Positions 2,914 to 30,769 of a stretch of DNA of 64,000 nt are shown piece by piece. The notes under the pieces are model-generated. The model had not been told where the DNA came from, searched no databases, and was given only the letters and a program-made list of their open reading frames with translations. Source of the DNA: Octopus sinensis (Eukaryota); NCBI RefSeq assembly GCF_006345805.1, contig NC_043024.1:15314001-15378000 (forward strand). Direction: 5' to 3'. Both the position numbers and the translations under genes were made by a program. Position 1 is the first letter of the stretch; each line of letters opens with the position of its first letter.

Positions 2914-3106
2914 CCCACAAGGTGCTAAACATAGAGAGTACAAACAAGGACAGACAAAGGGATTAAGTCGATTACATCGACCCAGTATATCGACCCCGAA
3001 ATGATGAAAGGCAAAGTCGACCTCAGCGGAATTTGAACTCAGAACGTATTGGCAGACGAAATACGGTTATGCATTTCGCCTGGCGTGCTAACGTTTCTGC
3101 CAGCTC
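2914..3106 (-). mobile_element. tRNA-derived SINE (family B)
   Basis: Minus strand reads GAGCTGGCAGAAACGTTAGC (A-box-like) ... GAGTTCAAATTCC (B-box-like); related copies at 12273-12503, 13975-14176 and 15237-15467. Confidence 0.8.
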
Positions 3107-3635
3107 ACTCACTCACTCACTCTCTCACTCACTCTCTCACTCACTCACTCACTCACTCACCCACCCACATCCTCACTTACCGACCCACTCACTCACTCAC
3201 TCACTCACGCACCCACTCAATCACTCACTCACTCACTCACTCACTCACCCACCCACTCACTCACTCTCTCACTCACTCACTCACTCACTCACTCACTCAC
3301 TCACTCACTCCTCACTCACTCACTCACTCACTCACTCACCCACCACTCACTCACTCACTCACCCACCCACATACTCACTTACCGACCCACTCACTCACTC
3401 ACTCACTCACGCACCCACTCAATCACTCACTCACTCACTCACTCACTCACCCACCCACTCACTCACTCTCTCACTCACTCACTCACTCACTCACTCACTC
3501 ACCCACCCACTCACTCACTCACTCACCCACCCACTCACTCATTCACTCACTCACTCACTCACTCACTCACTCACCCACCCACTCACTCACTCACTCACTC
3601 ACTCAATCACTCCCTCACTCATTCTCTAACTCACC
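3103..3635. repeat. (ACTC)n tetranucleotide satellite with ACCC variants and an internal higher-order repeat
   Basis: Direct reading; accounts for the His/Ser/Leu/Thr ORFs 3033-3629 and 3049-3651. Confidence 0.97.
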
Positions 3636-3809
3636 CTTCAGCCTGTTATGAAAACAACCTTCTCCAAAATTCATTAAAGACAACAGACCAGTATTTTTTA
3701 AAAAAATTCTTTATTAAAGTTCAGATCCCACAAAAAGTAATTTTTAGCCAAATTTTATGGTTACATGGCAGTTTAGGGCAACATCACAACACTATTAATA
3801 AGAAACTTA

Positions 3810-4608: not shown

Positions 4609-5562
4609 TCACTTTTGAGTGCCTTGTTCATAATATTCTTCTTTGCTAATTGATAAGTCATTAGAGGTAAGCAGAGAAGTCAATTCTGCATCTCCAGGCC
4701 ACCATCCTCTTGGATGAACGACCTCAATCCTTGTGGAATCTGCTGTGATAGAACTGATTTCCTTCTTCATACGCTCTTCAAAACCTTTGAATGTTGTCGA
4801 ACCACCAGACAATACAATGTTGGCAAACATGCCTTTCCTAATATCCCTATCACATTTTATGATTGAGTTATAAATCAGTTTATGAATGCCATCAGATTCC
4901 TTACCAATTAAACTTGGCTGGAACATAACTTCTGGCGTTCGGAATCGTTCATTGCCAATGGTAATGGCTTGCTTGTCAGGTAATCTATATTTCTCAGAGG
5001 CTGCAGTCTGCATTTCCTGTTCAAAGTCTAGAGCAACATAACAGCACTTCTCTTTGATGTTACGGACAGTTTCCGTCTGAGAATGACTGTCAAAGGAATT
5101 GCCAGGTAAAGTCAACATACTCGTAAGGTAATCTGTCATGTCCACACCACCAAAATCCCACTGGACAGCAGCATCTCGTTTAATTGACCCGTCATAGACA
5201 GGGACAATTTGGGTGATGCCATGACCTACATCCACAGACATACCTGTGCTATGACCAGAAGCAAAAATGGACAGTAAAGCCTGATTAGTAATACGTAATG
5301 TGTGAGCATTAAACTTTTCAAACATAATTTCGGCCATCTTTTCTCTGTTGACCTTAGAATTATGAACAGCCTCAGTCAACAAGATAGAGTTTTCCTCAGG
5401 TGCAACTTCCAACTTGTGGAATATATACTGCCAAATCTTCTCCATCTCATCCCAGTTGGTAATAACACCACGTTCAATAGAATGCTTCAAATCAAGAACA
5501 AACTTGTAATCAAAGTCCTTTTTGTTGTAGTAATCTTTGAGTTCATTTCCAATCATTTCATC
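4609..5562 (-). CDS. Divergent actin-related gene copy 1, exon 2 (degenerate C-terminus; possibly a pseudogene)
   Basis: Actin-like motifs LKHSIERGVITNWDEMEKIW, LLTEA, DVGHG, VRNIKEKCCYVALDFEQEM, ITIGNERFRTPE, NIVLSGGSTTF. Acceptor ttgtatttcag|GAT GAA ATG at 5563/5562, phase 0. Confidence 0.9.
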   Translation of the reverse strand, partial: DEMIGNELKDYYNKKDFDYKFVLDLKHSIERGVITNWDEMEKIWQYIFHKLEVAPEENSILLTEAVHNSKVNREKMAEIMFEKFNAHTLRITNQALLSIFASGHSTGMSVDVGHGITQIVPVYDGSIKRDAAVQWDFGGVDMTDYLTSMLTLPGNSFDSHSQTETVRNIKEKCCYVALDFEQEMQTAASEKYRLPDKQAITIGNERFRTPEVMFQPSLIGKESDGIHKLIYNSIIKCDRDIRKGMFANIVLSGGSTTFKGFEERMKKEISSITADSTRIEVVHPRGWWPGDAELTSLLTSNDLSISKEEYYEQGTQK

Positions 5563-8299: not shown

Positions 8300-8633
8300 T
8301 TTTAACCGCTAAAGATATTTTTTAATAAGCTGGCCATTGATAAAATTTTTTTCTTTTGAAAACATTTTATCCTACATTAAATATATATATATATATATAT
8401 ATATTAGCGCAGAAAACGGACGTTAAACGATGATGATGATACATCTGCACAAATGTATATATATATATAGATGTATTGCATACATGTATATGTATAGATG
8501 TACATATATATAGATATAGTTGTATATGTATGCATGTATATGTGTAAATGTATATATAGAGAAATACATGAAATATGTACACATATATACATGCATGCAT
8601 ATATATACACCCACACACACACATATGCATAAG

Positions 8634-8945
8634 TGCAGGTGTGGTTGTGTGGTAAGAAGCTTCATTCCAAAACACATGGTCCTGGGTTCAGTCCCACTGT
8701 GTGGTGACTTGGCATGTGTCTTCTGCCATAGCCTCAGATCAACCAAAGCCTTGTGAGTGGATTTCGTAGAGAAAAAATGAAAGAAATCAATTGTATATAT
8801 GTAAGTGTATGTGTGTGTCTTTGTGTTTCTCCCTCATCACTGCTTCACAACTGCTGTTTGTTTATTTACTTTCCCATAACTTACTGGTTTGACAAGAAGA
8901 AACTGATAGAATAAGTACCAGGTTTATCAAAATAAAAAAAAAGCA
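8634..8945 (+). mobile_element. tRNA-derived CORE-like SINE (family A)
   Basis: GTGTGGTAAG A-box-like and GGTTCAGTCCC B-box-like motifs, CORE-like TTGGGCAAGTGTCTTCT in the family consensus, internal (TA)/(TG) tract. Copies at 11587-11995, 19548-19972(-), 56446-56860, 59738-60160, 60648-61055 and 63758-64000(-). Confidence 0.85.
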
Positions 8946-10046
8946 CTAGGCAGTGTCTCATATTTTTGTTTGCCCAACCTGTTGTATCTATTAATCTATC
9001 CTTTTGTGTGTGTGTGTGTGCATATATATATATATATATAATACACAAACACACACACGCATACATCATCATCATCATCATCATCATCGTCATCATCATC
9101 GTTTAACGTCCGCTTTCCATGCTAGCATGGGTTGGACGGTTCAACTGGGGTCTGGGAACCCCGAAGGCTGCACCAGGCATATGCATATTCATTATTTTAT
9201 ATAAAAGTCAATTTCCTTATGTGTGTTCGTGTGTTACTTATACATTCGAAAACTACTGCACCAATCCTAATGAAGTTTGGAACACAAAATCAAGCCTAGG
9301 GAGAAGAGTAATGCTGTGTGTTTCCTACAATTTCATGGACGAAAATTACTGAATGGATGCTTATGATATTTGAAACTTAGATTCAATGCATAAGGGCGGG
9401 TATAATGCAATTTGTTTGGTTTGAACTTGAGATGGCTTAAAGTGGTGAACTTTTAACCATAGATATTAGACACAGATGAAGTAATATTTCTAAACTTTCA
9501 TTTTAGAAGTTACAAAGACCCCTTCATGGGGATTTAACACCCACAATTTAGTCATTTTCTCTAAGCAAAGACGAATATAGTTGTACTCATGGGAGCTATA
9601 GGGTCACCGGAGCATAAAAGATGAACGTTATTTGTAATTGAATGGTACAACAGTGTAAGAGTTTGCTTTGAGATATATTTAGATTGTGATTTCTGCAATG
9701 TGGTGCATAAATTGTCAAGTAAAGGAGAGGCATCATGCGAAATAACCTGGAAAAGAAAAGACCCACGAAATAAAACCCTGTTGCTGGGAAACTGAGTCTC
9801 CAGGTGACCCAATGGGTCATGGGTAGTCTAGTATATTTTAAAATCAAGGACGCTGGACAGTGGGAAAATAAGAAAAGTAAACGTGGAAAAATACATGAAA
9901 AAGTGGTGCAAAAAATGGAATAAGAAAAATGAAATGAAGTCAAAAAAACTAATATCATCATCTTCCCTGATTGCAGAAAGCTCATTAATTACAACTGGTT
10001 TAGAATAAAATAAAATAAAATATGTCAAAGCCTGGAAGACAGCAAC

Positions 10047-10460
10047 TCAATGTGGAGTAGGTGGAACCCTCCAATTCAGTAAAAGAAACTTGGCCATGTG
10101 TCTACTTCTGCTCAAAATTTCAGATCTGCATTTCTTAGATCCATGAACATATGGCTTGAATTTCTCCACAATTCTCCACTTAATTGTGTGTGATGTGGAG
10201 CTGCTCCTCAAATTCCATACATGGCTAATCAATTTAGTTGTATTACTTTTATCAATGTACCTGAAAGAAAATAGGTGGTTTGCACAACGTTTGTTGAATT
10301 CACCCCTCACATAACCCAATGTAATTCTTCTGTAATACCTCAGTGTTTATTGTACGTGCCTCATATATTACAGAGTTCATTGTACATGCCTGGTCAAGTG
10401 GGTAGGCTTCAGGGTCTCAGCTGTTACAACTGGGTGTTGTCTCTTGCAGATTTTTAACAA
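10047..10460 (-). mobile_element. Penelope-like element GIY-YIG endonuclease remnant in intron 1 of copy 1
   Basis: GEFNKRCANHLFSFR...KLISHVWNL...HTIKWRIVEKFKPY..GSKKC; homologous remnants at 23400-23770 and 40715-41085. Confidence 0.8.
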
Positions 10461-10614
10461 GTTATAATGTTCTTCATATTAGAGCAGCTGTATGATATTT
10501 GGAAAACGGTGAAGGATTACCTGATATTAAAGTGGACATAAAAGCCAGGATCATTATTATCATTTTGTGTGTGTGTGTGTGTACAATTAGAGATATAAGT
10601 TGTTATCAACTTAC

Positions 10615-10737
10615 CGGCACATTAGGATAACCAACTTCTGAAGGAATGACAATTCTTGGTTCAGGATCACCTCCAAAGCCAGCTTTACATGTATGTGATC
10701 CATTATCAATGATGACAGGATGAACTACATCAGCCAT
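10615..10737 (-). CDS. Divergent actin-related gene copy 1, exon 1 (41 codons)
   Basis: [41 protein letters not shown] followed by GTAAGT donor at 10614; contains the actin phosphate-1 loop DNGS..CKAG. Confidence 0.93.
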
Positions 10738-10848
10738 GTTAGATAAAAGGTTCCTGGCTAAACTATAAAAATGTAAATGTTTTGTTGATATTGTTGTTGA
10801 TGGAACGTGAACTTGTGTTCGATTTAACTGCTGGTTGTTTAATGAAAA

Positions 10849-11390
10849 TAAAAATGTACAAGGAAGAAAGCTAAACTGTATCAATTGAATGAAATTTCAC
10901 ACTAATGGTAAAATGTAGAAAAGACAAGTATTAGTTTGTATTGGATTTCATGTTCTATTTTCTGACCAATATCTTTTCTTCATTACAAAACCAGGAAGAT
11001 TTCTATAAAGAAACTGCGTGCATACATTTAATTAATTATATTCAATGTTATTTCAGAAATGTGGTGAACCATACATTTGTTCATGTGATATTGTATAAAA
11101 GTTTTAAAGCAAACAATTCTTCCTTGTAAGAGTTTTGATTCTCCGGAATTCTCTTCCTGGTCCTATCTTTTCCTAAAACATTGTGACTTCAAGAGGAACA
11201 TACATAGCATGAATCTTGGCTAAAATATAGAAATATAAATGTCTGTTTTCTTAATATTGTTGTTTATGGAACGTGGAATTGTGTTGGATTTGACTGTTGG
11301 TGTTTAATGAAATTAAAAATGTTTGAGGAAGAAAGTTAAACTATTTTGGTTGGATGAAATTTCAATCTGGCGGATGAAATTTCAGATAAC
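10849..11390 (-). promoter_or_regulatory. Upstream non-coding tract nearly identical in all three actin-like genes (putative 5'UTR/regulatory region)
   Basis: Reverse complement of 22362-22903 and of ~39675-40216; about 5 differences versus copy 3 by eye. A regulatory function is inferred only. Confidence 0.55.
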
Positions 11391-11586
11391 ATTCAGATTT
11401 GAAACACCCCAATTGAGAAAGGAATGCAAAGACCAAGGGAACTGTCTCTAATTTCAGGCCCAGGAAGTAGAAAGTAAAAAATAAACACCTCACAAATTGT
11501 TAATGACTAATTCTGGATGAATAACTCAATTCTGGGCCCAAAATATGGTTGTTTGGTCAAGGATATATATGAAATGTATATAATAG

Positions 11587-11995
11587 GAATGGCTGTCTGG
11601 TAAGTAGCTTGCTTACCAACCACATGGTTCTGGGTTCATTCCCACTACGTGGCACCTTGAGCAGGTATCTTCTACTATAGCCTCAGGCCAACCAAGCCTT
11701 GTGAGTTGATTTGTGAAACGGAAACTGAAAGAAGCCCGTTATACATATGTATATGTATATATATATATGTATGTGTGTGTATATGTTTGTGTGTCTGTGT
11801 TTGTCCTCCAACAATGCTTGATAACCAATGGTGGTGTGTTTCCGTCCCCGTCACTTAGCGGTTTGGCAAAAGGGACCGGTAGAATAAGTACTAGGCTTAC
11901 AAAGAATAAGTCCTGGGGTCGATTTGCTCAACTAAAGGTGGTGCTCCAGCATGGCCACAGTCAAATGACTGAAACAAGTAAAAGAGTAAAGAGTA
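11587..11995 (+). mobile_element. CORE-like SINE family A
   Basis: Same head and body as 8634-8945, ending GAAACAAGTAAAAGAGTAAAGAG. Confidence 0.88.
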
Positions 11996-12016
11996 AAATA
12001 TTTTCTTTTACATATA

Positions 12017-12193
12017 TACAAGGTCTGATCAATAAGCATTTGGACTTTTGCCATAGTAATGAAGCTGAAGTACACTGACCAAAAAGTACGCTCAGCAAAA
12101 TTCAAGGCCAGTCTGTGCCAAGTGGCTTTACACTGTGTCGTTTAGGTTCATTAATATAGCAACAGTCCGGATACTTATTGATCAGCCCATGTA
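12017..12193. mobile_element. mariner-type MITE
   Basis: TA-flanked imperfect ~30-bp TIRs TACAAGGTCTGATCAATAAGCATTTGGACT / AGTCCGGATACTTATTGATCAGCCCATGTA. Confidence 0.75.
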
Positions 12194-12866
12194 AGTGCAG
12201 ACGTGGCTTTTTTATTAAGAAATCATGTGGTTTTAGATTGAATCCCACTGTGTAGTGCTTTGGACAAATACCTATTTCTTTACTACCCACAAGGGGCTAA
12301 ACACAGAGGGGACAAACAAGGACAGACAAACGGATTAAGTCGATTATATCGACCCTAGTGTGTAACAGGTACTTATTTAATCGACCACGAAAGGAAGAAA
12401 GGCAAAGTCGACCTCAGCGGAATTTGAACTCAGAACATAATGGCAGACGAAATACGGCTACGCATTTCGCCCGGCGTGCTAACGATTCTGCCAGCTCGCC
12501 ACCTTGGACAAATGCCATCTACTATAACACATCTGATATAGGAAAATAAGGTTGTCACAACTAGAAGTTTCTGATCATGGATCCACTCAACGACAACAAC
12601 GCTCAAAAACAACAACAACGCTCAAACACACTCACACACACACACAAGCGCACACACACACACAAGCGCACACACACACATATATATATTAAATCTGAAA
12701 AGAAAAGGCAAACAGTTTGACAAGACTTGACAAGGACATTTATAATAAAAGGTTTAGATAGTCTGTGACAGCTGTTTCTAGGACATTCCAAATATTGGAA
12801 CATCGTGTTGAGCGAAGATTCCAAATGTTGATATTCCATCATCGGAGAAAGATAAGTTAATCATAG
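12131..12866 (+). repeat. ~740-bp local direct duplication (partner 15096-15816), including a family-B SINE nested in a family-A SINE remnant
   Basis: Near-identical sequences; the nested SINE is flanked by the 13-bp TSD TTGGACAAATACC (perfect at 15224-15236 / 15468-15480). Confidence 0.9.
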
Positions 12867-14180
12867 GTATTTTGATTAGAATCTCTGGTCTATCCACAAC
12901 CGAGGTAATACTCCATAACCATGCCACCTATTACATTCGAACGCTTGCAGCTAGCGGCTTCTTGCAAAAATAATGTTCCTATCTAACACTAGGCTTAAGA
13001 ACTACCCAGCTCCATTACATTCCAAGGCAACATACCCTAAAAGAATGGAGGCAACATCCCTCACAGTTGAGAGGGATACTCAACCCTTTACTAGGAACTG
13101 TAAAATGTGTAAAAGGCAGCATATTCTGCCACCTCTCATACACCCCTATAATACCCGTGTAAAAGTTAACCCTATACATCATCATTATCGCTTAACGTCT
13201 GCTTTCCATGCTGGCATGGGTTGGATGGTTTGACTGAGGACTGGCAAGCCAGATGGCTACACCAGGCTCCAATCTGATCTGGCAGAGTTTCTACAGCTGG
13301 ATGCCCTTCCTAACGCCAACCACTCCGAGAGTGTAGTGGGTGCTTATATGCGTCCCCGGCACGTGGACCAGTCTGGTTGTACTGGCAACAGTCAAGCTCA
13401 AATGGTGTTTTTTACATGTCACCTGCACAGGTGTCAGTCCAGTGGCACTGGCAATGACCTTGCTCGAATGTTTTATTCACTGCCACTGGCACAAGTGCCA
13501 GTAAGGCGACGCTGGTAACAATCATGCTCAAACAGTGCTTTTTATGTGCCACCGGCATGGAAGCCAGACAGCTGCTCTGGCAGTGAACCTGCTCAGATGG
13601 AGCTGTTAGTTCTCCACTGGCACGAGTGCCAGTCATCGATTTGGTTCAATTTCGATTTGAACCAAATTCAATACATAGAACAGAATTCTCAGTACCAACT
13701 AGGAAACATGAACCCCGCCAGATTACCTAATAGAAGCTGGGGGAGAACCCTACTTTAGTACTACCCCTTTCTCCTTAAATGTTAAGAGCTTATCCCGGAC
13801 CTTTTTTACTGTCATTGATTCCAACTTCGCTCCTCACCATAAGTACCCCTCTATCTTTTATCGATGTACCCTGAAATTATCCTACCCTTTCCTGCCTAAT
13901 AGCGAATCCACTGTAGACTTCATATTGTCTAATAACAATAACGATGATGATAATAACGATAATATTACTTTCTATTATAGGCACAAGGCCTGAAATTTGG
14001 GGAAGAAGGATAGCTGATTACATCAACCTCAGTAATTAACCAGTACTTAATTGATCGACCACAAAAGGATTAAAGGCAAAGTTGACCTTGGTAGAATTTG
14101 AACTCAGAATGTTGCGGCAGACAAAATACCACTAAGCATTTTGCCCAGCGTGCTAACAATTCTGTCTGCTCACCACCTTA

Positions 14181-14211
<31 letters not shown>

Positions 14212-14244
14212 ATAATAATAATAATAAAAATAATAATAATAATA

Positions 14245-14654
14245 AAAAGGCCAACAGACCAGATATAGTTGTCAGAGATCATGAAGAAAAAAAATGCCTT
14301 CTAATTGATGTATCAATACCGGCAGATGACAACGTGTCTCTAATAGAAATGGAGAAACTCTCAAAATACAAAGACCTGGAAATAGAGGTAACTAGAATGT
14401 GGAATCTGAAAACAGAAACATTCCTATCATAGTAGGTGCATTAGGCATGATAAAAAAATATTCAGACAAATACATAACAAAAACACCAGTACTAACAAAT
14501 ATATATAACATACAGAAAATTGCACTACTAGGCACTGCACACATCCTACGCAGAACACTTTCCATACAATAACCATCAGAGCATCACAACAATCCACAGC
14601 ACATACCCAAGGCACACAGAGCTGCGCTTGGTAGTGAAGTGAAAAATAAAACTA

Positions 14655-14656
<2 letters not shown>
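14245..14656 (+). mobile_element. R4/Dong-type (RLE) non-LTR retrotransposon 3' fragment
   Basis: NRPDIVVRD...CLLIDVSIP.D.N......EKLSKYKDL is a PD-(D/E)xK restriction-like endonuclease; flanked by (AAT)n. Confidence 0.85.
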
Positions 14657-15069
<413 letters not shown>

Positions 15070-15816
15070 CAGATGGTATATGATCAAAGCTATCAACTGT
15101 GTGGTTTAGGTTCATTAATATAGCAACAGTCCGGATACTTATTGATCAGCCTATGTAAGTGCAGACGTGGCTTTTTCATTAAGAAATCATGTGGTTTTAG
15201 ATTGAATCCCACTGTGTAGTGCTTTGGACAAATACCTATTTCTTTACTACCCACAAGGGGCTAAACACAGAGGGGACAAACAAAGACAGACAAAGGGATT
15301 AAGACAATTATATCGACCCCAGTGCGTAACTGGTACTTATTTAATCGACTCTGAAAGGAAGAAAGGCAAAGTCGACCTCGGCGGAATTTGAACTCAGAAC
15401 GTAATGGCAGACGAAATACGGCTACGCATTTCGCCCGGCATGCTAATGTTTCTGCCAGCTCGCCACCTTGGACAAATACCATCTACTATAACACATCTGA
15501 TATAGGAAAATAAGGTTGTCACAACTAGAAGTTTCTGATCATGGATCCACTCAACGACAACAACGCTCAAAAACAACAACAACGCTCAAACACACTCACA
15601 CAAACACACAAGCGTACACACACACATATATATATATATTAAATCTGAAAAGAAAAGGCAAACAGTTTGACAAGACTTGACAAGGACATTTATAATAAAA
15701 GGTTTTGATAGTCTGTGACAGCTGTTTCTAGGACATCCCAAATATTGGAACATCGTGTTGAGCGAAGATTCCAAATGTTGATATTCCATCATCGGAGAAA
15801 GATAAGTTAATCATAG

Positions 15817-17746: not shown

Positions 17747-18500
17747 GCCCTGATGCAGTACCAGGCAGTGGCTCTCATGGCTTCTGATCTTAATTGATTG
17801 GAAGTGTTATCATGTACATTGTTTTGTCTTGGTATAAAAGATGGGCTACAGCAAATATTCAGCTCAATACCACAGATTTGCTTGTCAGTTGTTTGACCGT
17901 AACCAGTTGAGCATGTCCCTTAGTGGCTGACGATATGTGCATCTCTGATCACGAGCAGAAGTAGTGGGGGAGCATCATAGCCATGTGTTGAGAGGGATTC
18001 TTTGGGGTTTGAATAGTTCACCTCTGGAAACATGGGTGGTTCTTTCAACATCCTTAAACAACCCAGGGACCTTTTGAGCGGGATGGGCTACTCAACCTGA
18101 AGAAAATTCTAACTGGGCCCCACCTGCAAGGTCATGTGCTGTTTATCTTGATATGAGATCACCATGTCGCGCACATATGGTTATGATGCATGTGCCTGGT
18201 ATACCCTTATCAAATGGGTAGTCATGATGAGTATACAGTCAAAGCCAATCTGGAACCCAATCTAGGCCCCCACATCTACGGTGTTTGCTGCTGGAATAAG
18301 GAGTGGTTGGAGATCACCTGGTCGTTAGCCTCAAATCGCCAGGCCTGGTCAGCGTTTGTGACAGATGCAGCATTGAGGATGAATGAAGCCAGCTCAACCC
18401 ACCCAGGGTGAATGCTGTAAGAAGAAGGAAGATGGGTATACTGGGCTTCGTATATTTTACCCCAGTGTCACTTTGAGGGCATGCACTGCTCTCTCACTCA
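17743..18500. mobile_element. Uncharacterised (AAT)n-flanked element, copy 2, with the same nested LINE fragment
   Basis: Tandem to copy 1, about 90% identical; insert translates LGPHIYGV..WNKE.LEIT.SLASN.Q.WSAFV.DAALRMNEASSTHPG* with an (AAG)n tail. Confidence 0.75.
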
Positions 18501-18509
18501 ATAATAATA

Positions 18510-18564
<55 letters not shown>

Positions 18565-19508
18565 TTAACAGCTCAGAAAATCTACTAAAAACAGTTAATA
18601 AAGAACACATGATGAATCCTTTAATAGGAGAGAAGGACAAAGAAAGCATGTCAGGCAGATGGAAGAGAAACATCTGAACGGCCAATTTTGAAGAGGCACT
18701 GAAGATGTATGTGGAACAACATCCTGAGTTTGGTTAAAAAGGAGGCAATGACAAAGTGAAACAGAGAGCCTAATTGGAGTAGCCCAAAATTAAATGATAG
18801 AAACAAAAAACAACTTGAGAAAAAAATATATATGGAGGGAATATGTCAGAAGCATGTAGAGCCTGTAGAACTTGGAATGAGACAGTGGCATACATTGTGA
18901 CAGAATGCTCCAAGTTGGCACAGGAAGAATATAAGAAACGGAGGCATGACCAGGTTGTAAAAGTTATACACTGGAAACTGTGCCAGAAATGGGGATTTGA
19001 AGGTGGAAATACAGAGTACAGTCATTGAGCCAAAAGAGTACTTGAATTGGAGAAATGTACGATTTTGTGGGACATTCCTATTCAAACAGACAAGAAGTTA
19101 GAAAACAACAGACCAGATAAGGAAAAGCAAAGCTGCTTACTTATTGAACCATCATTCCCATTTGATTCCAGGTTCGTAAAAAAGAGGAATTAAAATAAAA
19201 TACAATCCCTTCAAATTTTAAAGAGGAAGAACTTGGAGCATGAAAACAGTAAAGTTGTGCCCGTAATAATTAGTACTTTGAGAACAGGAAGCAAAGATAT
19301 AGACAAATGGCTGAAGGGGGTTGGAATAGGATACCCGGCAGAGCTCCTACAGAAAGTTTGTGTCTTAGGGACAGCAAGGATTATCAGGAGGGTTCTAAAC
19401 ACTTGAAAGACTGTTGAAAACTTGTGGATATCTAAGGTTACAGGTAGTAACCTGCTACCCACATAATTCCTACCAACCAGGAATAAGACTGAACTTGAAC
19501 CAAACCAA

Positions 19509-19510
<2 letters not shown>
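18565..19510 (+). mobile_element. Degenerate R4/Dong-type RLE LINE fragment (duplicate at ~35740-36680)
   Basis: CRACRTWNETVAYIVTECSKLAQEEYKKRRHDQV, WDIPIQTDK...NRPD. Confidence 0.85.
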
Positions 19511-19547
<37 letters not shown>

Positions 19548-19764
19548 CTTTTTCTCTCTTTCTCTTTTACTTGTTTCAGTCATTTGACTGCGGCCATGCT
19601 GGAGTACCGCCTTTAGTCGAGCAAATCGACCCCGGGACTTATTCTTTGTAAGCCCAGTACTTATTCTATCGGTCTCTTTTTGCCGAACCGCTAAGTGACG
19701 GGGACGTAAACACACCAGCATCGGTTGTCAAGCAATGCTAGGGGGGACAAACACAGACACACAA

Positions 19765-19802
<38 letters not shown>

Positions 19803-19972
19803 ATATATACGACAGGCTTCTTTCAGTTTCCGTCTACCAAATCCACTCACAAGGCATTGGTCGGTCCGGGGCTATAGCAGAAGACACTTGCCCAAGATGC
19901 CACGCAGTGGGACTGAACCCGGAACCATGAGGTTGGTTAGCAAGCTACTTACCACACAGCCACTCCTGCGCC
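19548..19972 (-). mobile_element. CORE-like SINE family A inserted in (AAT)n, unit A only
   Basis: Full-length reverse copy; absent at the equivalent site in unit B. Confidence 0.9.
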
Positions 19973-19973
19973 T

Positions 19974-20015
<42 letters not shown>

Positions 20016-20530
20016 GTGGCACAAGATCAAAGCTTGCTAACCAAAAACTACCAGGCTAATGTTCTTCAAAATGGTTCTGACCTCAAATGCAAATTCTGTA
20101 ATAAATTTGATGAAACAATAGACCGTCTTGTCTCGGGAAGTTAAGAAATTTTGATAAGCCTATAATATCATATAATTGATCCTATATATTTCTGTTAAAC
20201 GTTTGAAATTTGCTTTCATTATAACTTTCAGAAACCCTGTCGATCATATAATTATTATCGCAAATATTGATCTGCATCAGTTAAAATGTGACTTGGTTAC
20301 TAACCTGTATGTTCTGAGTTCAAATTACACCAAAGTGAATTACATATTTCATATTTCTGTGTTCAATAAAAATAAAATACCAACTAAGTGTGGATTGATT
20401 TAATCTAGTTCATTCTCTTTAGAAGTCTTGGGTCAATGTTAGAAATCAGTATTATTTTAATAACAATAATAATAATAATATAATAATAATAATAGTAATA
20501 ATAATAATAATAATAGTAATAATAATAATA

Positions 20531-20593
<63 letters not shown>

Positions 20594-20779
20594 GTGGCAC
20601 AAGATTAAAGCTTGCTTACCAAAACCTACCAGGTTAATGTTCTTCAAAACGATTCTGACCCCAAATGCAAATTCTGCCATAAATTTGATGAAACAATAGC
20701 CCATCTTATCTCGGGAGATTATGAAATTTTGATAAGCCTATAAAATCATATAATTGATCCTATATAAATATACATAAAA

Positions 20780-21400
20780 TATACAATTTATGCAAGATCT
20801 GAGCAGAACAACATCACATGACAACCAAATATTGAGAGGATCGTTTTGAATAACACCAAAAACTACAAAGCCACCTGTGATAGCAGCGAACTTAGATGGA
20901 GTAGCCATGGGTTCCCCCTTAGGACTGCTGTTTGCAGCATTCTACCTATACACTTGAGAGAACAGAATAATACCAAAACATAATACACAGTGTATTTAGA
21001 TGATATACAAGCTAAGTACATGATATGCTAATGATAATGGGTACATTAAATGACATTCAGAAATGAAAAGAAAGGTTAGAAACCAACTCAGTATTAAAAT
21101 CTAACTTTCAGAATTTTAGGTTCATTGGAAAACATAGAAATTGAAATGAGAAGATACGTGACAGCTGCAAACACAAGAATCTAACAAATACACATAACTA
21201 CATGGAAAGAGTGAATGTCCAGACAAACTATGTCAGCGGTGATATCAATATTTTTAAGTACATTTAGGTTCTTATCTACAAATAAGGCAAGGGAGAAAGA
21301 AATCCGCAATGTTTATTCCAAGAGAGTTGTAGACAGAGGTAGAGAAGAATAATAACAAATACATCGAAGAATACATCCAATGAATATACACTTTCCCCCT
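20780..21400 (+). mobile_element. Penelope-like RT remnant (duplicate ~38290-38900)
   Basis: GVAMGSPLG.LFA.FY and YLDDI motifs across stops and frameshifts; the 3' part is homologous to 62000-62110 (minus). Confidence 0.72.
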
Positions 21401-21819
21401 CTACAAAAAATCCCAAATTTTATTTAATTTGCTTTGCGGGAAGGATTGTTTCAACGAAGTCACGTCTTGTTCTTGCCTTCGAATGTGGAGTAGTTGAAAC
21501 AGGGACAACTAAAGAAGGGGAATATTCTTTATGTTGTATGTCTCGTTTCTCTGTTTGTTTTTTTCGTTGTTCAAAAAAAGTTCGTTTCTATGTTTTTGTT
21601 TTCATGTTTTCGTTTCTCATTGTCTTCAACGTATTTTTGATGTCCTGTACCCATATATGCATGTATATATACATATATATGTAGGTATGTACATATATGT
21701 ATGTATATATGCATATATTTATATAGTATTAACATTATTATATGATCGAATGCCACGCATCCTTTTCCAAGTTATATATATATATATATGTACGTATGTA
21801 TATATATATTTATATATAC

Positions 21820-21862
<43 letters not shown>

Positions 21863-21878
21863 TATGTATATATATATT

Positions 21879-21923
<45 letters not shown>

Positions 21924-21950
21924 ACGTGTACGTATGTATGTATATATATT

Positions 21951-22000
<50 letters not shown>

Positions 22001-22043
22001 TGTGTGCGCGTGTGTACATATGTATATATATATTTATATATGT

Positions 22044-22074
<31 letters not shown>

Positions 22075-23031
22075 GGTGTATCAGGTGTGCTTTTAGTTTG
22101 TCTGGAGCTACAGTAGATGGTATTTGTCCAAAGCGTTGTGCAATGGGATTGAACCCAAAACCACACGATTGGGAAACAACCTTCTAAATTAAATAGCCAT
22201 GCCAGCACTTATATATGAGTTACTCATCCAGAATCAGTCGTTAGCAATTTGTTATAAGATTTATTTTATATTTTTAACTTCCTGGGTCTGAGATTAGAAG
22301 CAATTCCCATGGCCATTGCATACCTTTCTCAATTGCTGTGTTTCAAATCTAATGGCAAAACGTTATCTGAAATTTCATCCGCCAGATTGAAATTTCATCC
22401 AACCAAAATAGTTTAACTTTCTTCCTCAAACATTTTAAATTTCATTAAACACCAACAGTCAAATCCAACACAATTCCACGTTCCATAAACAACAATATTA
22501 AGAAAACAGACATTTATATTTCTATATTTTAGCCAAGATTCATGCTATGTATGTTCCTCTTGAAGTCACAATGTTTTAGGAAAAGATAGGACCAGGAAGA
22601 GAATTCCAGAGAATCAAAACTCTTACAAGGAAGAATTGTTTGCTTTAAAACTTTTATACGATATCACATGAACAAAGGTATGGTTCACCACATTTCTGAA
22701 ATAACATTGAATATAATTAATTAAATGTATGTACGCAGTTTCTTTATAGAAATCTTCCTGGTTGTGTAAAGAAGAAAAGATATAGGTCAGAAAATAGAAC
22801 ATGAAATCCAATACAAACTAATACTTGTCTTTTCTACATTTTACCATTAGTGTGAAATTTCATTCAATTGATACAGTTTAACTTTCTTCCTTGTACATTT
22901 TTACTTGCATTAAACACCAACAGCTAAATCCATTACAAGTTCACGTTCCATCAACAACAATATTTACAAAACCAACTTTTACATTCACATACTTTAGTCA
23001 GGAACGTTTTGTCTAACTCAGAAATATAAAC

Positions 23032-23154
23032 ATGGCTGTTAAAGTTCCTTGTGTTGTCATTGACAATGGATCGTATACATGTAAAATTGGCCTTGGACGT
23101 GATGTTGAACCGAGAATTTTCATTCCTTCACGTAGCGGTTATTGCAATGATCAG
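23032..23154 (+). CDS. Divergent actin-related gene copy 2, exon 1
   Basis: MAVKVPCVVIDNGSYTCKIGLGRDVEPRIFIPSRSGYCNDQ, 123 nt, CAG|GTATGT donor. Confidence 0.93.
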
Positions 23155-23399
23155 GTATGTTGACTATATTTATATAAATAATTGCAATACACACGATCAT
23201 AATGATCCTTGTCTTTTAATGTCCACTTTTCCATGTTTGCATGGGCCAGGTAGAATTCTTCATGAGGGATATTCTATGCTGATACCTTTTATATCAGGCT
23301 ATCCTTCGCCTTTTTCCAAATATCATACAGCTGATGAACATGAAGACCATTATAACTTGTGAAACTCAATCACGAAGATACCTCTCGCAGTTGTAACTG

Positions 23400-23770
23400 C
23401 CAAGACTCTGAAGCCTATCCATTTGACCAGGCATATAAGTTAACCTCCGTCATATACATGGCAGAAGTTTGAGATAAGCTCCAAGACAAATCCATTGAAA
23501 AAAGAATTACATTGGTTTATGTGAAGGAGAATCCAAGAGACGTTATGCAAACCACCTATTTTCTTTCTGGCACATCAATTAATGTAATGCAACTAAGTTG
23601 GCTAGCCATGTATGGAATTTGAAGAGAAGCTCCACAGCACATACAATTAAGTGGAGAATTGTGGAGAAATCCAAGCCATACATTAATGGACATAAGAAAT
23701 GCAACTTCTCCATAGCAGAAAAGTCTCGTATGCTTTTTAGATCGAGATCTGCCTAATTCCAGATCTGAAA
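23400..23770 (+). mobile_element. Penelope-like GIY-YIG endonuclease remnant (duplicate ~40715-41085)
   Basis: CNCQD...SVIYMAEV...NYIGLCEGESKRRYANHLFSF...KLASHVWNL...IKWRIVEKSKPY. Confidence 0.82.
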
Positions 23771-24041
23771 TTTTTAGTAGGTGTAGAAACACGGACAGGT
23801 TTCTTTTATTGAATTTAAGGGCACCACCAGCTCCATATTGAGTTACTGTCTCACAGACTTTGACATACTTTCTGTTATTTTGTTCTAAACCAGTTGTATT
23901 TAATGAGCTTTCTGAAATTGGGGAGGACGAAGATTTTAGTTTTCTTGACTTTGTTTCTTTTTTGTCTCATTTTTTTACATCACCTTTCTTCTTGTGTTTC
24001 CTTATTTTCTCACTGTCCAGCGTCCTTGATTTTAATATATA

Positions 24042-24072
<31 letters not shown>

Positions 24073-24200
24073 ATGCATAAAGAGAATTTGGAAGATTGCT
24101 TTAAGATACATTGTGCCTTTTATAAATATACCTGTTCATTTATCGTAAAAGCATAGAAGTATCAGTAGCTCTTTCAATTGATACATACATGCATACATAC

Positions 24201-24232
<32 letters not shown>

Positions 24233-24889
24233 CTGTTAAAAGTCAGATTGAATCTTGCTTGATTGAATCAGCCAAACTGGCGCATAATGGGAAAATACTA
24301 TGAATTAAATTTACCCAGAAATGTTAATACGAACGCAATGAAACAATTTTCATGTAAACCGACCAAATGGCTTTTGAGATATTAGAGGTTTTCGGGATAT
24401 AAATACCGAAATCGTTGCATAATGGGAAAATGTTCCGAAAATAATCTTCATCGTGAAATGGAAGAATCTCTTATCTATCTGTTAGACACTGTGAGTTGAT
24501 GACGACAAAATACAATTTTTTTTTACAATAAATATTTCTATTTTGACTTTTGTTAAACGTAATATCTTAATCCTTTAATAGTATTTCTAACTGAATGTGA
24601 TTTCAAAAATGTAAGCATTTGTACTGTTTTAGCTTTCTTTAAACAGAAAATATTTTAATGATTTTAAAAATTATTTTCCGAAATTATAAAAATTTTTTTG
24701 GCTTATAAAAAAGATATTCACAACTGCTTGTGGTGTTTCTCCCTCAGTATAAAAGTGTCTCGTCAGGTGATGTTATAAGAGGTATATATTTAAATAAACT
24801 CTGTTTTGCTCAGTTTTAATACAGCATGTTGTTGGTGACCATGTTGGAATAGCTAGGAATAGCTAGGGACTCATTCCATTGCAATGTTC

Positions 24890-27800
24890 ATCGTCATCAT
24901 CATCATCATCATCCTTTAGCGCCCGCTTTCCATGCTAGCATGGGTTGGACGGTTCAACTGGGGTCTGGGAAGCCAGAAGGCTGCACCAGGCCCAGTCTGA
25001 TCTGGCAGTGTTTCTACGGCTGGATGCCCTTCCTAACACCAACCACTCCGTGAGTGTAGTGGGTGCTTTTTACATGCCACCCGCACAGGAGCCAGACGGA
25101 GCTGGCAAACGGCCATGGTCGGATGGTGCTTTTTACGTGCCACCTGCACGGGGGCCAGGCGAGGCTGGCAATGGCCACGATCGGATGGTGCTTTTTACGT
25201 GCCACCGGCACAGAGGCCCGTCGGTGCGGCGCTGGCAACGGCCACGTTCTAATGGTTTGCTTACGTGCCACCGGCACTGGTATCACAGCTGCATTTCCAT
25301 TGATGTTGATCGATTTCGATTTTGATTTTTTGATTTCCACTTGCCTCAACAGGTCTTCACAAGTAGAGTTTTGTGTCCCAAGAAGGACAGGTATGCATAA
25401 GTGGACTGGCTACATCCCAGGTAGAGGCCATGGGTTATGGTCTCACTTGTCCTGCCGGGTCTTCTCACGCACAGCATACTTCCATAGGTCTTGGTCTCTA
25501 GTTATTTCCTCGGTGAGACCTAAATTTCGGAGGTCGTGCTTCACCACCTCATCCCAGGTTTTCCTGGGTCTACCTCTTCCACAGGTTCCCTCAACCGCTA
25601 GGGTGTGGGACTTTTCACACAACTATCTTCAGCCATTCTCGTCACATGACCATACCAGCGCAAACGTCTCTCTTGCACACAACAACTGATGCTTCTTAGG
25701 TTCAACTTTTCTCTCAAGGTACTTACACTCTGTCGAGTATGAACACTGACATTACACATCCATCAGAGCATACTGACTTCATTTCTTGCGAGCTTACGCA
25801 TATCCTCAGCAGTCACAGCCCATGTTTCACTACCATGTAGCATGGCTGTTCGTACACATGCATCATACAGTCTGCCTTTTACTCTGAGCGAGAGGCCTTT
25901 TGTCACCAGCAGGGGTAAGAGCTCTCTGAACTTTGCCCAGGCTATTCTTACTCTAGCAGTTACACTTTCAGCACACCCTCCCCCGCTACTGACTTGGTCA
26001 CCTAGGTAACGGAAGCTATCAACTATTTCTAGTTTTTCTCCCTGGAATGTGGTGGAAGTTGGTCTCTGCACATTTTCAGTGTTTATTGCTCCTGAGCATC
26101 TTCCACATACAAAAACTATTTTCCTAGTTAGCCTTCCTTTGACATTGCTGCACCTCTTACATGTCCATAGCTTACACTTGGTGCATCTTATAGAGTTTCT
26201 ACCTACGCCTTTTCTACTGATCGAGCAGGGCCATCTACCTGAAGGCGTTTGTGATTTGTCTACCTTCCTACTTATTAGAACTTTGGTTTTAGCTAGGTTG
26301 ACACAAAGGCCCTTCGATTCCAATCCTTGCTTCCATACCTGAAACTTCTCTTCCAGTTCTGATAGTGATTCAGCAATTAAAGCAAGGTCATCAGCATAGA
26401 GGAGCTCCCAGGGGCATCCTGTCTTGAATTCCTCAGTTATTGCCTGGAGGACTATGATAAATAGGAGGGGACTGAGGACTGAACCTTGGTGGACCCCTAC
26501 CTCTACCCGGAATTCTTCACTGTACTCGTTTCCAACCCTCACCTTACTAGCAGCGTCCCTGTACATGGGTCGCACAGCTCTCACTAACCATTCATCTATC
26601 CCTAGTTTCCTCATTGACCACCAGATAAGGGATCGGGGGACCCTGTCGAAGGCTTTCTCCATGTCAACAAAAGCCAGGTACAGGGGCTTATCTTTGGCTA
26701 GATATTTCTCCTGCAGCTGTCTTACCAGGAATATAACATCGGTACTACTTTTCCCTGGCACGAACCCAAACTGCGTCTCATCTAAACTAACTCTCTCTCT
26801 CTCTCTCTAATTAGTTGGGCTATGACCCTCTCCGAAACCTTCATTACCTGATCCAGCAGCTTGATACCCCTGTAGTTATTTGTATCTAGGGCGTCACCTT
26901 TACCTTTGTAGCAGTTGACAATTATGCTGCTACACCAGTCATTGGGAATGATTCCTTCGTGTATCACCTGGTTAACTATACGGGTGACTAGGCTATAGCC
27001 GACACTACCAGATATTTTGAGCATCTCTGCAGTGTTTCCTGATGGGCTTGGGGCTTTCCCTGTCTTCATGCTTCTAATTGCCTTAACTACCAAGGAACTG
27101 TCAATTCGGATAGCTGGTCCCTCTGTTGGGTCGACATTCGGCAGACTCTCTTTATCCCATTCATTTTCCTCATTCAGCAACCTTTCATAGTGGCGTCTAC
27201 AAACCTCTCTCTTTGCATCCTCATTTAGCGCAAGTGAACCATCATCCATGCGAACACATTTCTCTCCTACCACATCACGATTCTCTCTCACACACTGTCT
27301 TGCAACACGAATTACCTCAAGTCTTTCATCCTCACGGTGCAGAACATTGGCAAATTTTTTCTTATCTGCTTCCCCTCTGGCTAAATACACCTGCCTCCTA
27401 GCTTCCCTTCTGGCAGTCTGATACACTTCCCTGCTACCACCGTTCTTCCAGTCCTTCCAAGCCTGTTCCTTTGTCTAAGCCCTGTCAACAATATTGTTCC
27501 ACCACCACGTAATTTTGGGTCTTGAAGGGACTTTGCACCAACCGCAGATCATGTCAGTGGCTCTCAGCAGGTTGTCCCTTAGAGACCTCCAGTTGTGTTC
27601 TACCCCATGTGAAGCTATACCCCCTTCTATTTCGTCAAAGGCTTCAAGTAATATGTCTCTAAATCTCTGTCCATTTGCAAAATCTTTAAGCTTCCAGACC
27701 CTTCTTCTCCATGTTGGTCGTCTTCTGGTCGTCCTCTTAGTCCTGCTCCTAAAGTCACTAACTACCAGTCTGTGTTGTGGGGTACATTCTTCGCCTGGGA

Positions 27801-27951
27801 AGGTTTTGGCATTTATTAGCAGCCATCTTTCCCTTTTTCTGGCAAGGATGTAGTCGATTTGGCTAGTATGTCATCCCCATCGGTAGGTGACCAAGTGGCT
27901 TGTAGGTTTCCTGAAGTTAGTGTTGCAAACCATAAGACTATTCGCATCGCA
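24890..27951 (-). mobile_element. 5'-truncated RTE LINE in intron of copy 2 (antisense), with long 3'UTR and (GAT)n tail
   Basis: ORF pieces 26782-27426 and 25763-26761 carry RT motifs; frameshift at an expanded (CT)9 tract; 3'UTR has ~55-60-bp tandem subrepeats. Confidence 0.95.
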
Positions 27952-27999
27952 TATATAAGGATAATCATATTAAAAGGAATATGAAGCTGTGAAAACATT

Positions 28000-29290
28000 T
28001 ATGACAGAATTCACTGAGTACCATAACGAATGGGGCTGCAATTCTTGGCTGAAATTGAGGTCTACAAACATGATTCACTCGTGATTTACATGCGATCGGG
28101 AAATAGGGCTGAAGTTGACTGTCATAAATTTCTTGGTTTAAAATTAATTTAAAACGATTATTAAACTATTAAAAATACAAAATATCAAATATATTACTAT
28201 TAATAATTGTTAGTAAAACCTTTAGAAGTGATTTGAACACATATCAATACTGTCAAAGTTTTTCCTTTGTGATTTCGTTTATTATATAAAACACATTCTG
28301 ATACAAAAACAGATCGGTGTTGACCTAAGAAAGAAGTTAAACAAGCTCACATGTTTGGTGATGGATACAGGAAGATTTCTGAACGATTTTCTGTCAAAAT
28401 ACTGACTATTCAGTTGATTATTAAGAAATATCGAACCTTGAGTTGTGTGAAATTTGTCGAATAGAAGAAAATGAAAGGTATCAGACGAACTCATTCAAAG
28501 ACTGGTGAGATGAATAGAGGGTGAACCGAGGACAACTGTAAAAGAGATCAGCCATCAGGTTGGGCTGTTGGGCGTAAATGTTACATCATCATCTGCATTG
28601 TATACATTTGGGCACCGTGGGTGCTGAATGAGAACCTCATCCCTACCCAGGCCCACCACGTTAAGGCTCGGCTAAACTATGCAAAAAACTTGTTAAACAA
28701 ACCTTCTCAATTTTGGTCGATGGTTCTGCGAATTGATGAGACTAAACTTTAACTTTTTGGCCACAACAAGAACGCCACAGTTTAGCGGAAGTCTGGGCGG
28801 CCCTCTTGACCCCAAAACATCATTTCTACCAAGAAGCATAGGTGTGGAAATTTAATGTTTTGGAGGTGTTTTACAGCAATCAATTGAGGATGACTAGTTT
28901 TTATCAAAGACCAGATGAAAAAAGAGGATTACGTCAAAATATCAGACGAAAATCTTTTAGTGTCGACAGAAGAGTTGGTGCTAGGTGACAACTGGATCTT
29001 TCAAGAAGATAATGATCCAAAGCATATATACTGAAACTAACGACTGCCTGGATCGGTGAAAATGGCTTCAACATTTGGTAATGGCCATCATAATTGTTGG
29101 ACCTGAATCCAACTGCAAAAATTGGTGCCATTCCAAAGCTCAGATTTGGTAAAGAGGTCTAAAATATGAGGAATTGCAAAGAAAAAATGATAAATAAATT
29201 TGTTTCTAGTTAGACAAAAAAATTGAATATAATTATTTATAATAAATAATTTTATGGAATTTATTAATTTTGCTTGTTAGCCATTGTAAA
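28000..29290 (+). mobile_element. Degenerate Tc1-family (DD34E-type) transposon (duplicate ~45330-46620)
   Basis: ARLNYAK...FWSMVLRIDETKL, LMFWRCF, WIFQEDNDPKH and WPS.LLDLNP recognisable across stops. Confidence 0.85.
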
Positions 29291-29456
29291 AACATATTAA
29301 TGACTAAACGAAATTGTGTATATTATTAAAGTATAAATAATATACAAAAGATATTACAAACCGACTAGTGATAAGAATATATTTTTAAAAAATCAATGTT
29401 ATTCTACACTATATGAATACTTATAAACACCACCGTCTCTCTGTTTCGGTCTCCCC

Positions 29457-29554
<98 letters not shown>

Positions 29555-29555
<1 letters not shown>

Positions 29556-29810
29556 GCGCAATGGCCCATTGGTTAGGGCAGCGGACTCGCAGTCTTAGGA
29601 TCGCGGTTTCGATTCCCAGACCGGGCGTTGTGAGTGTTTATTGAGCGAAAACACCTAAAAGCTGCACGTGACTCCGGCAGAGGGTGGTGATCCCTGCTAT
29701 ACTTTCTCCCACTCTTTCTTCTGTTGGCCTGCTCGCTTAGCTAGCGAGGTGGGGTCATTCGAAGGCTAAAACAATGCGAACGCATAGTGACCAGCGATGT
29801 ATAACTATAT
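29555..29810 (+). mobile_element. tRNA-derived SINE (family C; duplicate 46888-47140)
   Basis: GGCGCAATGGCCCATTGGTTAGGG A box and GGTTTCGATTCCC B box, then a non-tRNA body; followed by (AGAT)n. Confidence 0.75.
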
Positions 29811-29822
29811 GTATATATGTAT

Positions 29823-29900
<78 letters not shown>

Positions 29901-30769
29901 GTAGCTATAGGTATGTATAGATAGATACCTTACTGTTCCATTTAGCGAAGCTCAACAAAAAGAGTACTCCATTCAATGAATGATAAGTATGATTTAATGT
30001 ACAAAGAACAAAAGATTCAAAGAATGAAGCCAAAGAGAGGTGTGCTGCCGTAAAGAAATACATAGTTAGCTAACCTGAGGAAAGTGTAGGAAAAGGAAAG
30101 AGAATGTGGGAGACATCAGGATAGAGATGGTGGTAAAGTGCTGGGCATATTCTCAAGGGCTGGAGATCAGAATATAAATGGGATGGTTGAGTAAAGGAAG
30201 AGAGAGATATCGATGGTGGCAAGTGCCAGGGAATACCCTTGAGGTTCAAATACCATAATGTAAGTGGCAGGATATTGCGAAGGAAGCACAATTAGAGAGC
30301 GCGGAGTGGGCGGAGTGAGTGGTGAAAACCTGGGTATATATATATTAGTCGGTGGGTGCTACCAGATAGCAATGATACAGATAAACAGGGCCGTGTGAAT
30401 AGGATCGGGGAGTGAAAGGTAGGCATAGAGTATGAAGGAAGAAATGTGTGGAAGATGCAGAGATGTAGATTGGTTTGTTGGGGTTGGATGAGTGAGAAGT
30501 TTTCTTGTTACATGTAGGTGAAACACGTGTCAGGGGGACTAGCAAATTGCATTGATAAAGTGGGACAGGTGATGTGAGTGGAACACACAGGTCGGGGCCT
30601 AGCGGAGAGCTACGACACAGTGGGACAGGATTGGGGAGTGGGAGGTAAGCGTAGTGCATGAAGGGGAAATGAAGAGAAGAAATGAAGAGATGTAGTTTAG
30701 TATGTTGTGGTAGGGTGTGTGAGATGTTTACTTGTTAAGTGTGGGTGGGACACACAGCACTTCTAGAAC

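Follow-up and report, generated by a model that had tools for sequence, protein, structure and literature searches.

The inverted copies that form the palindromes of the human Y chromosome, with arms of tens of kilobases to megabases, are kept at least 99% identical by non-crossover gene conversion, and such repeats can in principle also mediate inversion of the spacer between them. Among directly repeated genes, the human fetal γ-globin pair HBG1 and HBG2 is the classic example of concerted evolution through conversion, with a tract that takes in coding sequence and stops at a simple-sequence hotspot. Slightom et al. reportedly placed this tract, in 1980, over the 5′ part of the duplicated genes, with a sharp boundary and older divergence beyond it.

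The closest described case to the one presented here is that of the paralogous mouse vomeronasal receptor genes of the V1R family, whose promoter ‘peaks’ of more than 500 bp are homogenised and for which conversion has been proposed (Stewart & Lane 2007, PMC1955453). In the HMA4 triplication of Arabidopsis halleri, recurrent ectopic conversion is accompanied by a network-like genealogy (Hanikenne et al. 2013, PMC3749932). We found no literature on conversion in octopus actin-like genes or at the locus studied here. This locus carries a tract of about 545 bp upstream of each of several actin-like paralogues, and the near-identity of its copies is probably, at a rough estimate of 85%, the outcome of recurrent ectopic (interlocus) gene conversion.

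The window, by which we mean the whole 64,000-nucleotide stretch analysed, comes from Octopus sinensis chromosome CM016886.1 (~15.314–15.378 Mb). It is AT-rich eukaryotic DNA with many microsatellites and interspersed repeats. A tblastn search with human β-actin as query located three two-exon actin-like genes within it, here called c1, c2 and c3. The c1 gene lies on the minus strand, with exon 1 at 10615–10737 (41 codons, donor GTAAGT) and exon 2 at 4609–5562, and encodes a protein of 358 aa that matches Pfam Actin (PF00022) over residues 3–356 with 331.7 bits and E = 6.7e-99, above the curated cut-off. The c2 and c3 genes lie on the plus strand, with exons at 23032–23154 and 32226–33212, and at 40345–40467 and 48802–49788, respectively. 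Each encodes 369 aa, and the c3 protein is identical to XP_029652464.2, annotated as ‘actin-like [Octopus sinensis]’. The exon 2 products are 51–54% identical to human β-actin.

A fourth O. sinensis gene, c4 (XP_036370416.1), has its ATG ~4.9 kb past the end of the window. The separately fetched c4-side locus (L002) overlaps window positions 58889–64000 at 100%; the gene occupies 9345–14644 of that locus (approximately window-equivalent 68233–73532), with a tract copy at 9345–9889. The orientation of c1 is inverted relative to that of c2–c4. The c2 and c3 genes are carried by a tandem segmental duplication on the plus strand with units of ~17.3 kb (18431–35459 and 35651–52065; 91–97% identity by self-BLAST), and substitutions between the two units amount to 2.1% over 9.4 kb. 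Divergence between the units varies from 0.4% to 6.4% per 500 bp, except for one stretch of 1.5 kb, 28034–29533, that shows zero differences from its counterpart in the c3 unit. This stretch could be another conversion tract or a product of local assembly smoothing.

Three LINE copies with reverse transcriptase and endonuclease reading frames, ~89% mutually identical, lie on the minus strand at 671–2892, 25763–27426 and 43053–45159; c2 and c3 each have one in their first intron, and the third is past the 3′ end of c1. A direct repeat at 1–2302, 25644–27951 and 42974–45284 was considered as part of the gene paralogy and rejected, being a LINE by its RVT_1 and Exo_endo_phos domains. SINE-like repeats of ~420 bp occur in both orientations at 8629–8938, 11584–12002, 19545–19986, 56444–56859, 59735–60160 and 60646–61055. 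The five full copies are 84–93% identical, the copy at 8629–8938 is at ~70–74%, and one copy adjoins the c1 upstream flank at a distance of ~190 bp from the tract. Neither ARAGORN nor Rfam called a tRNA in these repeats. In the AT-rich DNA downstream of c3, a 229-aa reading frame on the minus strand (52702–53391) contains an ISXO2-like DDE transposase domain (PF12762, E = 8e-19). Imperfect long microsatellite arrays with periods of 8–9 bp (3020–3650, 14576–15115, 21750–22080, 33800–34080 and 50420–50690) give rise to long but spurious frames when ORFs are listed mechanically.

Copy 1 of the tract lies upstream of c1 at 10849–11393 on the minus strand, with its proximal end 112 nt from the ATG. 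Copies 2 and 3 lie on the plus strand upstream of c2 (22359–22903) and c3 (39672–40216), each with its proximal end 129 nt from the ATG. Copy 1 is 98.2–98.9% identical to the other two. A repeat finder returned the same sequences as inverted repeats with arms of 558 nt each, 99% identical for 10836–11393 and 39672–40229, and 98% identical for 10836–11393 and 22359–22916. The spacer between the arms of copies 1 and 2 measures 10,965 nt. The maximal segment of high identity that copy 1 shares with copies 2 and 3 in a three-way alignment runs exactly from 11390 to 10849. Within its 542 sites, copy 1 differs at 5 from copy 3 and at 9 from copy 2 (6 and 10, respectively, when counted over the 545 bp of 10849–11393). 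Outside the segment, identity falls to 81% over 1124 alignable sites. In a maximal-segment permutation test, the observed score was 437 and the best permuted score 116, with 0 of 10,000 permutations reaching the observed value.

The sequences on either side of the tract can still be aligned, but with only ~80% identity. The upstream flank of copy 1 beyond 11393 has 79% identity over 143 nt. The proximal 112 nt of c1 are 85–86% identical to those of c2 and c3, but 92% identical to those of the O. bimaculoides orthologue. Exon 1 of c1 and c2 differs at 31 of 123 nt (74.8% identity), with 25 of 41 amino acids identical, and the start of the intron has 77% identity between c1 and its paralogues. 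The synonymous divergence of c1 and c2 is 0.285, so that the tract is ~15–30 times less diverged than neutral sites in these two genes. A 7-bp indel marks the distal boundary, and the proximal boundary (10849) falls inside a gene-proximal segment, described below as R, with no recognisable landmark there.

These measurements bear out much of the initial annotation of this DNA. It had described the tract as the reverse complement of 22362–22903 and ~39675–40216, which is exact, with about five differences from copy 3, which is also right, and the three-way alignment that it proposed returned its limits to the base. Its exon 1 counts were reproduced, and its ~80% flank beyond 11390, its sharp boundaries and its ~11-kb spacer agree with the identity, permutation and arm distances given above. 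It had further stated that copy 1 agrees at several sites with copy 3 and not with copy 2. This holds at six tract positions (79, 319, 374, 406, 412 and 426), and positions 209 and 402 go the other way, with copy 1 equal to copy 2 against copy 3.

As a probable 5′ conversion tract with a sharp edge, the octopus tract resembles that of HBG1 and HBG2, but its boundaries have no simple-sequence motif, and c1 is inverted. Its inverted, near-identical copies recall the Y-chromosome palindromes, although the octopus arm is only 545 bp long and is set within homology that has diverged to ~80%.

Comparison with other octopus species shows that the tract and its surroundings have different histories. 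In the flank, R, exon 1 and the intron, c1 of O. sinensis is 88–92% identical to c1 of O. bimaculoides, against 75–86% to its own paralogues c2 and c3. For the tract core, identity among the four O. sinensis copies is 97.5–98.9%, against 90.7–93.9% to all three O. bimaculoides copies. The flanks and exon 1 thus group by orthology, and the O. sinensis tracts group by species. Between the two species the tract has diverged by 6–9% and orthologous flanks by 8–12%. Evolution at about the flank rate between species, together with homogenisation within a species, is what marks concerted evolution. Outside a 120-bp core, the between-species rate is close to that of the flanks, which argues that the identity does not come from constraint.

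Homogenisation has not been continuous in every lineage, since the paralogous tracts of O. bimaculoides are only 89.5–93.6% identical. They are nevertheless more alike than their flanks, at 77–83%, which points to an older round of homogenisation that predates the split of O. bimaculoides.

This pattern is the one reported for the mouse V1R genes, in which paralogues resemble one another far more closely in unbroken promoter blocks of more than 500 bp than in the non-coding DNA around them, and low substitution between paralogues occurs without correspondingly low levels between orthologues (PMC1955453). The two systems differ in that the V1R blocks contain experimentally determined transcription start sites, whereas a promoter in the octopus tract is presumed from its position. 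The V1R family is also far larger, and in the octopus one copy is inverted and the coding dN/dS is ~1.

In the gene sense, the tract consists of 30 nt containing a palindromic TGAAATTTCA motif, a segment R′ of 150 nt, a unique middle of ~310 nt and the first 50 nt of R, and it spans approximately −656 to −112 from the ATG. R (10751–10899, minus strand) lies 162 to 14 nt upstream of the ATG and is presumed to be the proximal promoter or 5′UTR of c1. R′, in the distal part of the tract (11213–11363, minus strand; tract positions 31–181), is 81% identical to R in a local alignment covering −162 to −14, and we read it from this match as an old duplicate of the gene-proximal segment. The tract middle was also considered as a degenerate exon 1 or intron and rejected: its alignment score of 20 is no better than the mean for shuffled sequence (20.0), and 157 of 300 shuffles reached it, so that only R′ and R are homologous. 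Rfam gave 0 hits to structured RNA (10600–11600 at E ≤ 1, and the whole window at gathering thresholds), and ARAGORN found 0 tRNAs. A conserved small reading frame was sought in the region, where there are only frames of 30–62 aa within the tract and the in-frame upstream extension of the c1 exon 1 frame, none of them notable.

In both gene lineages, the 120-bp core (11188–11307, minus strand; −570 to −451) keeps 93–100% identity across O. sinensis and O. bimaculoides. The remaining tract is mostly at 78–92% between these species, with extremes of 52.5% and 100%, and in this resembles the flanks. The conservation of the core shows some purifying selection inside the tract, so that identity there does not come from conversion alone. 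The available gene models begin at the ATG, and from its position the tract is presumed to be a promoter or 5′ leader. Within it, the core may be a functional promoter or a first non-coding exon, and is the best candidate for the promoter of the family.

The initial annotation had offered gene conversion or strong selection as the force behind the identity. Purifying selection on a shared regulatory element, with no exchange of sequence, could draw on the conserved core and on the unvarying distance between tract and ATG, yet we regard it as very improbable. Constraint cannot give 97.5–98.9% identity among O. sinensis paralogues when the same sequences are at 91–94% to O. bimaculoides, and the species divergence of the tract, so close to that of the flanks, speaks against selection acting alone. 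The incompatible site patterns described below require exchange, and one O. vulgaris gene, c1b, has no tract core and still has an intact reading frame. It is the conversion half of the proposal that stands, on the species-wise clustering and on these incompatible sites.

The distribution of tract copies was assessed over ~330 kb of loci fetched through their proteins in three species, which yielded 14 copies. The O. vulgaris loci come from assembly GCA_951406725.2 (OX597840.1, 12.59–12.74 Mb; loci L001, L005 and L006) and those of O. bimaculoides from CM046627.1 (9.83–9.89 Mb; loci L003 and L004). Besides the three copies in the window, the tract occurs upstream of O. sinensis c4, upstream of O. 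vulgaris c1a, c2, c3, cX, cY and c4, and upstream of both recovered O. bimaculoides genes. In 13 of the 14 cases it precedes an actin-like ATG by 112–129 nt. The exception is an additional, partial copy in O. bimaculoides, 2.1 kb further upstream of the c2/3-type gene and beside an assembly gap. No copy was found away from actin-like genes in these ~330 kb.

Such a fixed placement bears on the idea, already raised in the initial annotation as a way in which conversion could fail, that a young high-copy transposable element inserted independently beside each gene. The surroundings are certainly rich in repeats, among them the LINE copies, the SINE-like 420-bp repeats and the DDE transposase frame. 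An element of this kind is nevertheless highly improbable here, and the evidence contradicts it at several points. The boundary sequences, when read, show neither terminal inverted repeats nor a target-site duplication at the tract ends; homologous flanks at ~80% continue on both sides, with no empty site; R′ is a duplicate, 81% identical, of the gene’s own proximal segment; and the ends of the identical stretch vary among gene pairs. Identity between c1 and c2 or c3 stops 112 nt upstream of the ATG, whereas identity between c1 and c4 continues to about +66 of exon 1, and this difference argues against a discrete mobile element.

The O. vulgaris array holds seven genes (c1b, c1a, c2, c3, cX, cY and c4) against four in O. 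sinensis, which reflects either a real change in copy number between very close species or a partial collapse in one assembly. Collapse or polishing of divergent copies to one consensus in the O. sinensis assembly, the other failure that the initial annotation had named, might be thought to gain from this difference, with which some collapse of the array is conceivable, and from the 1.5-kb stretch without c2–c3 differences. As an account of the tract it is extremely improbable. The copies are not identical but carry 6–11 copy-specific differences, and these recur in the independent O. vulgaris assembly, where the c1a tract differs from that of O. sinensis c1 at 1 of 545 sites and the c2 tract, a partial copy covering positions 222–545, from that of O. 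sinensis c2 at 1 of 324. The c2-specific variants 319G and 426A are both present in O. vulgaris c2, and O. vulgaris cY shares 79A and 319G with c2 without 426A. O. bimaculoides, in addition, has the same architecture.

The upstream region of O. vulgaris c1b (L001, 17903–18460) was considered as an ‘unconverted’ ancestral tract and rejected. Recombination between R′ and R has deleted one repeat unit of ~470 bp, and the junction carries a GC-richer, unrelated insertion of 370 bp with ATAGT on both sides. The tract of the O. bimaculoides c2/3-type gene is split into overlapping partial copies (L004, 7267–7710 and 9413–9870) that surround a 1.7-kb insertion with an N gap.

The site patterns within the tract indicate that sequence has been exchanged more than once. 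Among the O. sinensis copies, c1 pairs with c4 and c2 with c3 at tract positions 3, 250 and 302, and c1 pairs with c3 and c2 with c4 at positions 374, 406 and 412. The four-gamete test, applied to nine copies of full length, fails for 29 of the 120 informative pairs of sites, which gives a minimum of 5 exchanges. The conversion partners number at least four copies in O. sinensis and at least six in O. vulgaris. Between these two species, orthologous tracts show 1 difference in c1, 1 in 324 sites in c2, 7 in c3 and 9 in c4, and paralogous tracts differ at 3–19 sites (6–11 among the four O. sinensis copies). From these counts, the main homogenisation slightly predates the split of O. sinensis and O. 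vulgaris, with a few later exchanges.

We also considered a single chimeric duplication or replacement, in which a segment was copied into c1 on one occasion, with no change afterwards. The tract differences between c1 and c3 (5–6) are about as many as those between c2 and c3 (8), and this is compatible with one event close to the time of the c2/c3 duplication. A one-time event is nonetheless improbable in view of the four-gamete incompatibilities, with their minimum of 5 exchanges, and of the orthologous c3 and c4 tracts, whose 7–9 differences follow patterns common to other paralogues. Likewise, c4 has its own, differently bounded c1-type segment, and the paralogous tracts of O. bimaculoides are at 92% with flanks at 77–83%. 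The ‘recent gene conversion’ of the initial annotation therefore holds as conversion, but not as one recent event among three copies, given at least 5 exchanges that mostly precede the species split.

An excess of c2–c3 differences inside the tract, as a sign of exchange after their duplication, was sought and rejected (8/542 against 7/1124; Fisher p = 0.10, not significant). Singletons number 6, 2 and 3 in c2, c3 and c1, with no significant difference, and the variable sites are too few to place the exchanges in order.

The direction of transfer can be read at two places. Similarity of O. bimaculoides c1 to the other copies ends at tract position 440, and its positions 441–545 are only 63% identical to every other copy; over the same positions the c2/3-type copy of O. 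bimaculoides is 91% identical to all O. sinensis copies. This suggests that O. sinensis c1 was overwritten there by a c2/3/4-type donor, a reading based on the single outgroup copy of O. bimaculoides c1, which may itself have been altered. The c4 gene is c2/3-type in its flanks, intron and the 5′ half of exon 2, and c1-type in R (97.3%) and the first ~66 nt of exon 1. By this mosaic, c4 received its proximal segment and the start of exon 1 from a c1-type donor, so that exchange has run both ways.

Conversion has also reached the coding sequence. A second homogenised block lies in exon 2 of c1 (4966–5235, minus strand; CDS nt 451–720), with counterparts at 32553–32822 in c2 and 49129–49398 in c3. 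Over these 270 nt, c1 is 92–98% identical to the other paralogues, differing at 11–15 sites from c2, c3 and c4 as against 26 from its O. bimaculoides orthologue, and dS between c1 and c2, c3 or c4 is 0.035–0.054. The pattern identifies the block as a second conversion tract, so that conversion is active across the actin-like family and the upstream tract is its most recent and cleanest example rather than a uniquely protected module. The initial annotation had confined conversion to the upstream module, which the c4 exon 1 segment and the exon 2 block contradict; its claim of far more diverged coding exons is accurate for exon 1 and fails for CDS nt 451–720. The HMA4 triplication likewise combines tandem paralogues with lowered divergence between them, but there the coding sequence is homogenised and the promoters show a selective sweep, whereas in the octopus homogenisation is mostly upstream and the coding sequence is mostly divergent (PMC3749932).

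The proteins themselves do diverge, as the initial annotation had noted. Pairwise dN/dS is mostly 0.7–1.4, with dS up to 0.29; the exceptions are O. sinensis c2 against O. vulgaris cY (1.70) and O. sinensis c1 against O. vulgaris c1b (2.37). Intact two-exon reading frames of 358–369 codons are found in 10 of the 11 copies from the three species. Exon 2 of O. vulgaris c1a appears frameshifted, and the c1 lineage has a remodelled C-terminus that it shares with O. bimaculoides. These frames and rates suggest that the actin-like proteins are fast-evolving and probably still functional, rather than products of pseudogenes.

The molecular mechanism that we infer for recurrent ectopic conversion is repair by homologous recombination, in which one paralogue would serve as template and overwrite another without crossover. 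Unequal crossing-over could not homogenise an inverted copy; the orientation of c1 would thus rule it out and require non-crossover conversion. Recombination depends on homology, and the simplest explanation of the sharp edges is that conversion would be confined to the long perfect matches that remain. Flanks diverged by ~20% would block extension of the heteroduplex, and the tract would then behave as a self-perpetuating island of identity. The main homogenisation falls just before the split of O. sinensis and O. vulgaris, with an earlier round before that of O. bimaculoides.

With inverted arms 98–99% identical, recombination could in principle also flip the 11-kb spacer, as had been suggested. 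Of this spacer, the 1.7 kb adjoining c1 were compared and are collinear between O. vulgaris and O. sinensis; the O. vulgaris loci retrieved on either side are separated by a 6.5-kb gap. In O. bimaculoides, collinearity with the c1 upstream region ends near 14221, ~2.8 kb beyond the tract, and c1 and the c2/3-type gene are on the same strand, unlike in O. sinensis and O. vulgaris. This same-strand arrangement is possibly a local orientation error in a Hi-C scaffolded, gapped assembly; together with the split tract, it may reflect either a true rearrangement or faulty scaffolding. Nothing supports inversion mediated by the tract, which is possible in principle.

Any regulatory function that conversion might serve is more speculative. 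The tract could be a selectively maintained, interchangeable promoter or leader cassette, with conversion favoured as a means of keeping the array under one control region, although we consider this rather unlikely. If it were so, the genes might be co-expressed, or compete equally for a shared activator, as has been proposed for the V1R promoters. The proteins would meanwhile be free to diverge at dN/dS ~1, the 120-bp core would be the functional heart of the cassette, and the inverted c1 and c2 would form a bidirectional, symmetric promoter pair.

Recurrent ectopic conversion at this locus is a clear instance, though an unexceptional one, of a familiar process, and it calls for no new mechanism. 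It provides a clean worked example of concerted evolution acting mainly upstream of the coding sequence, in a cephalopod family whose proteins evolve near-neutrally fast with intact frames, and in an array that holds four genes in O. sinensis but seven in the very closely related O. vulgaris. For the actin-like family, this means that trees of paralogues mislead at this locus, as the histories of the upstream region, of exon 1 and of the central part of exon 2 are not the same.
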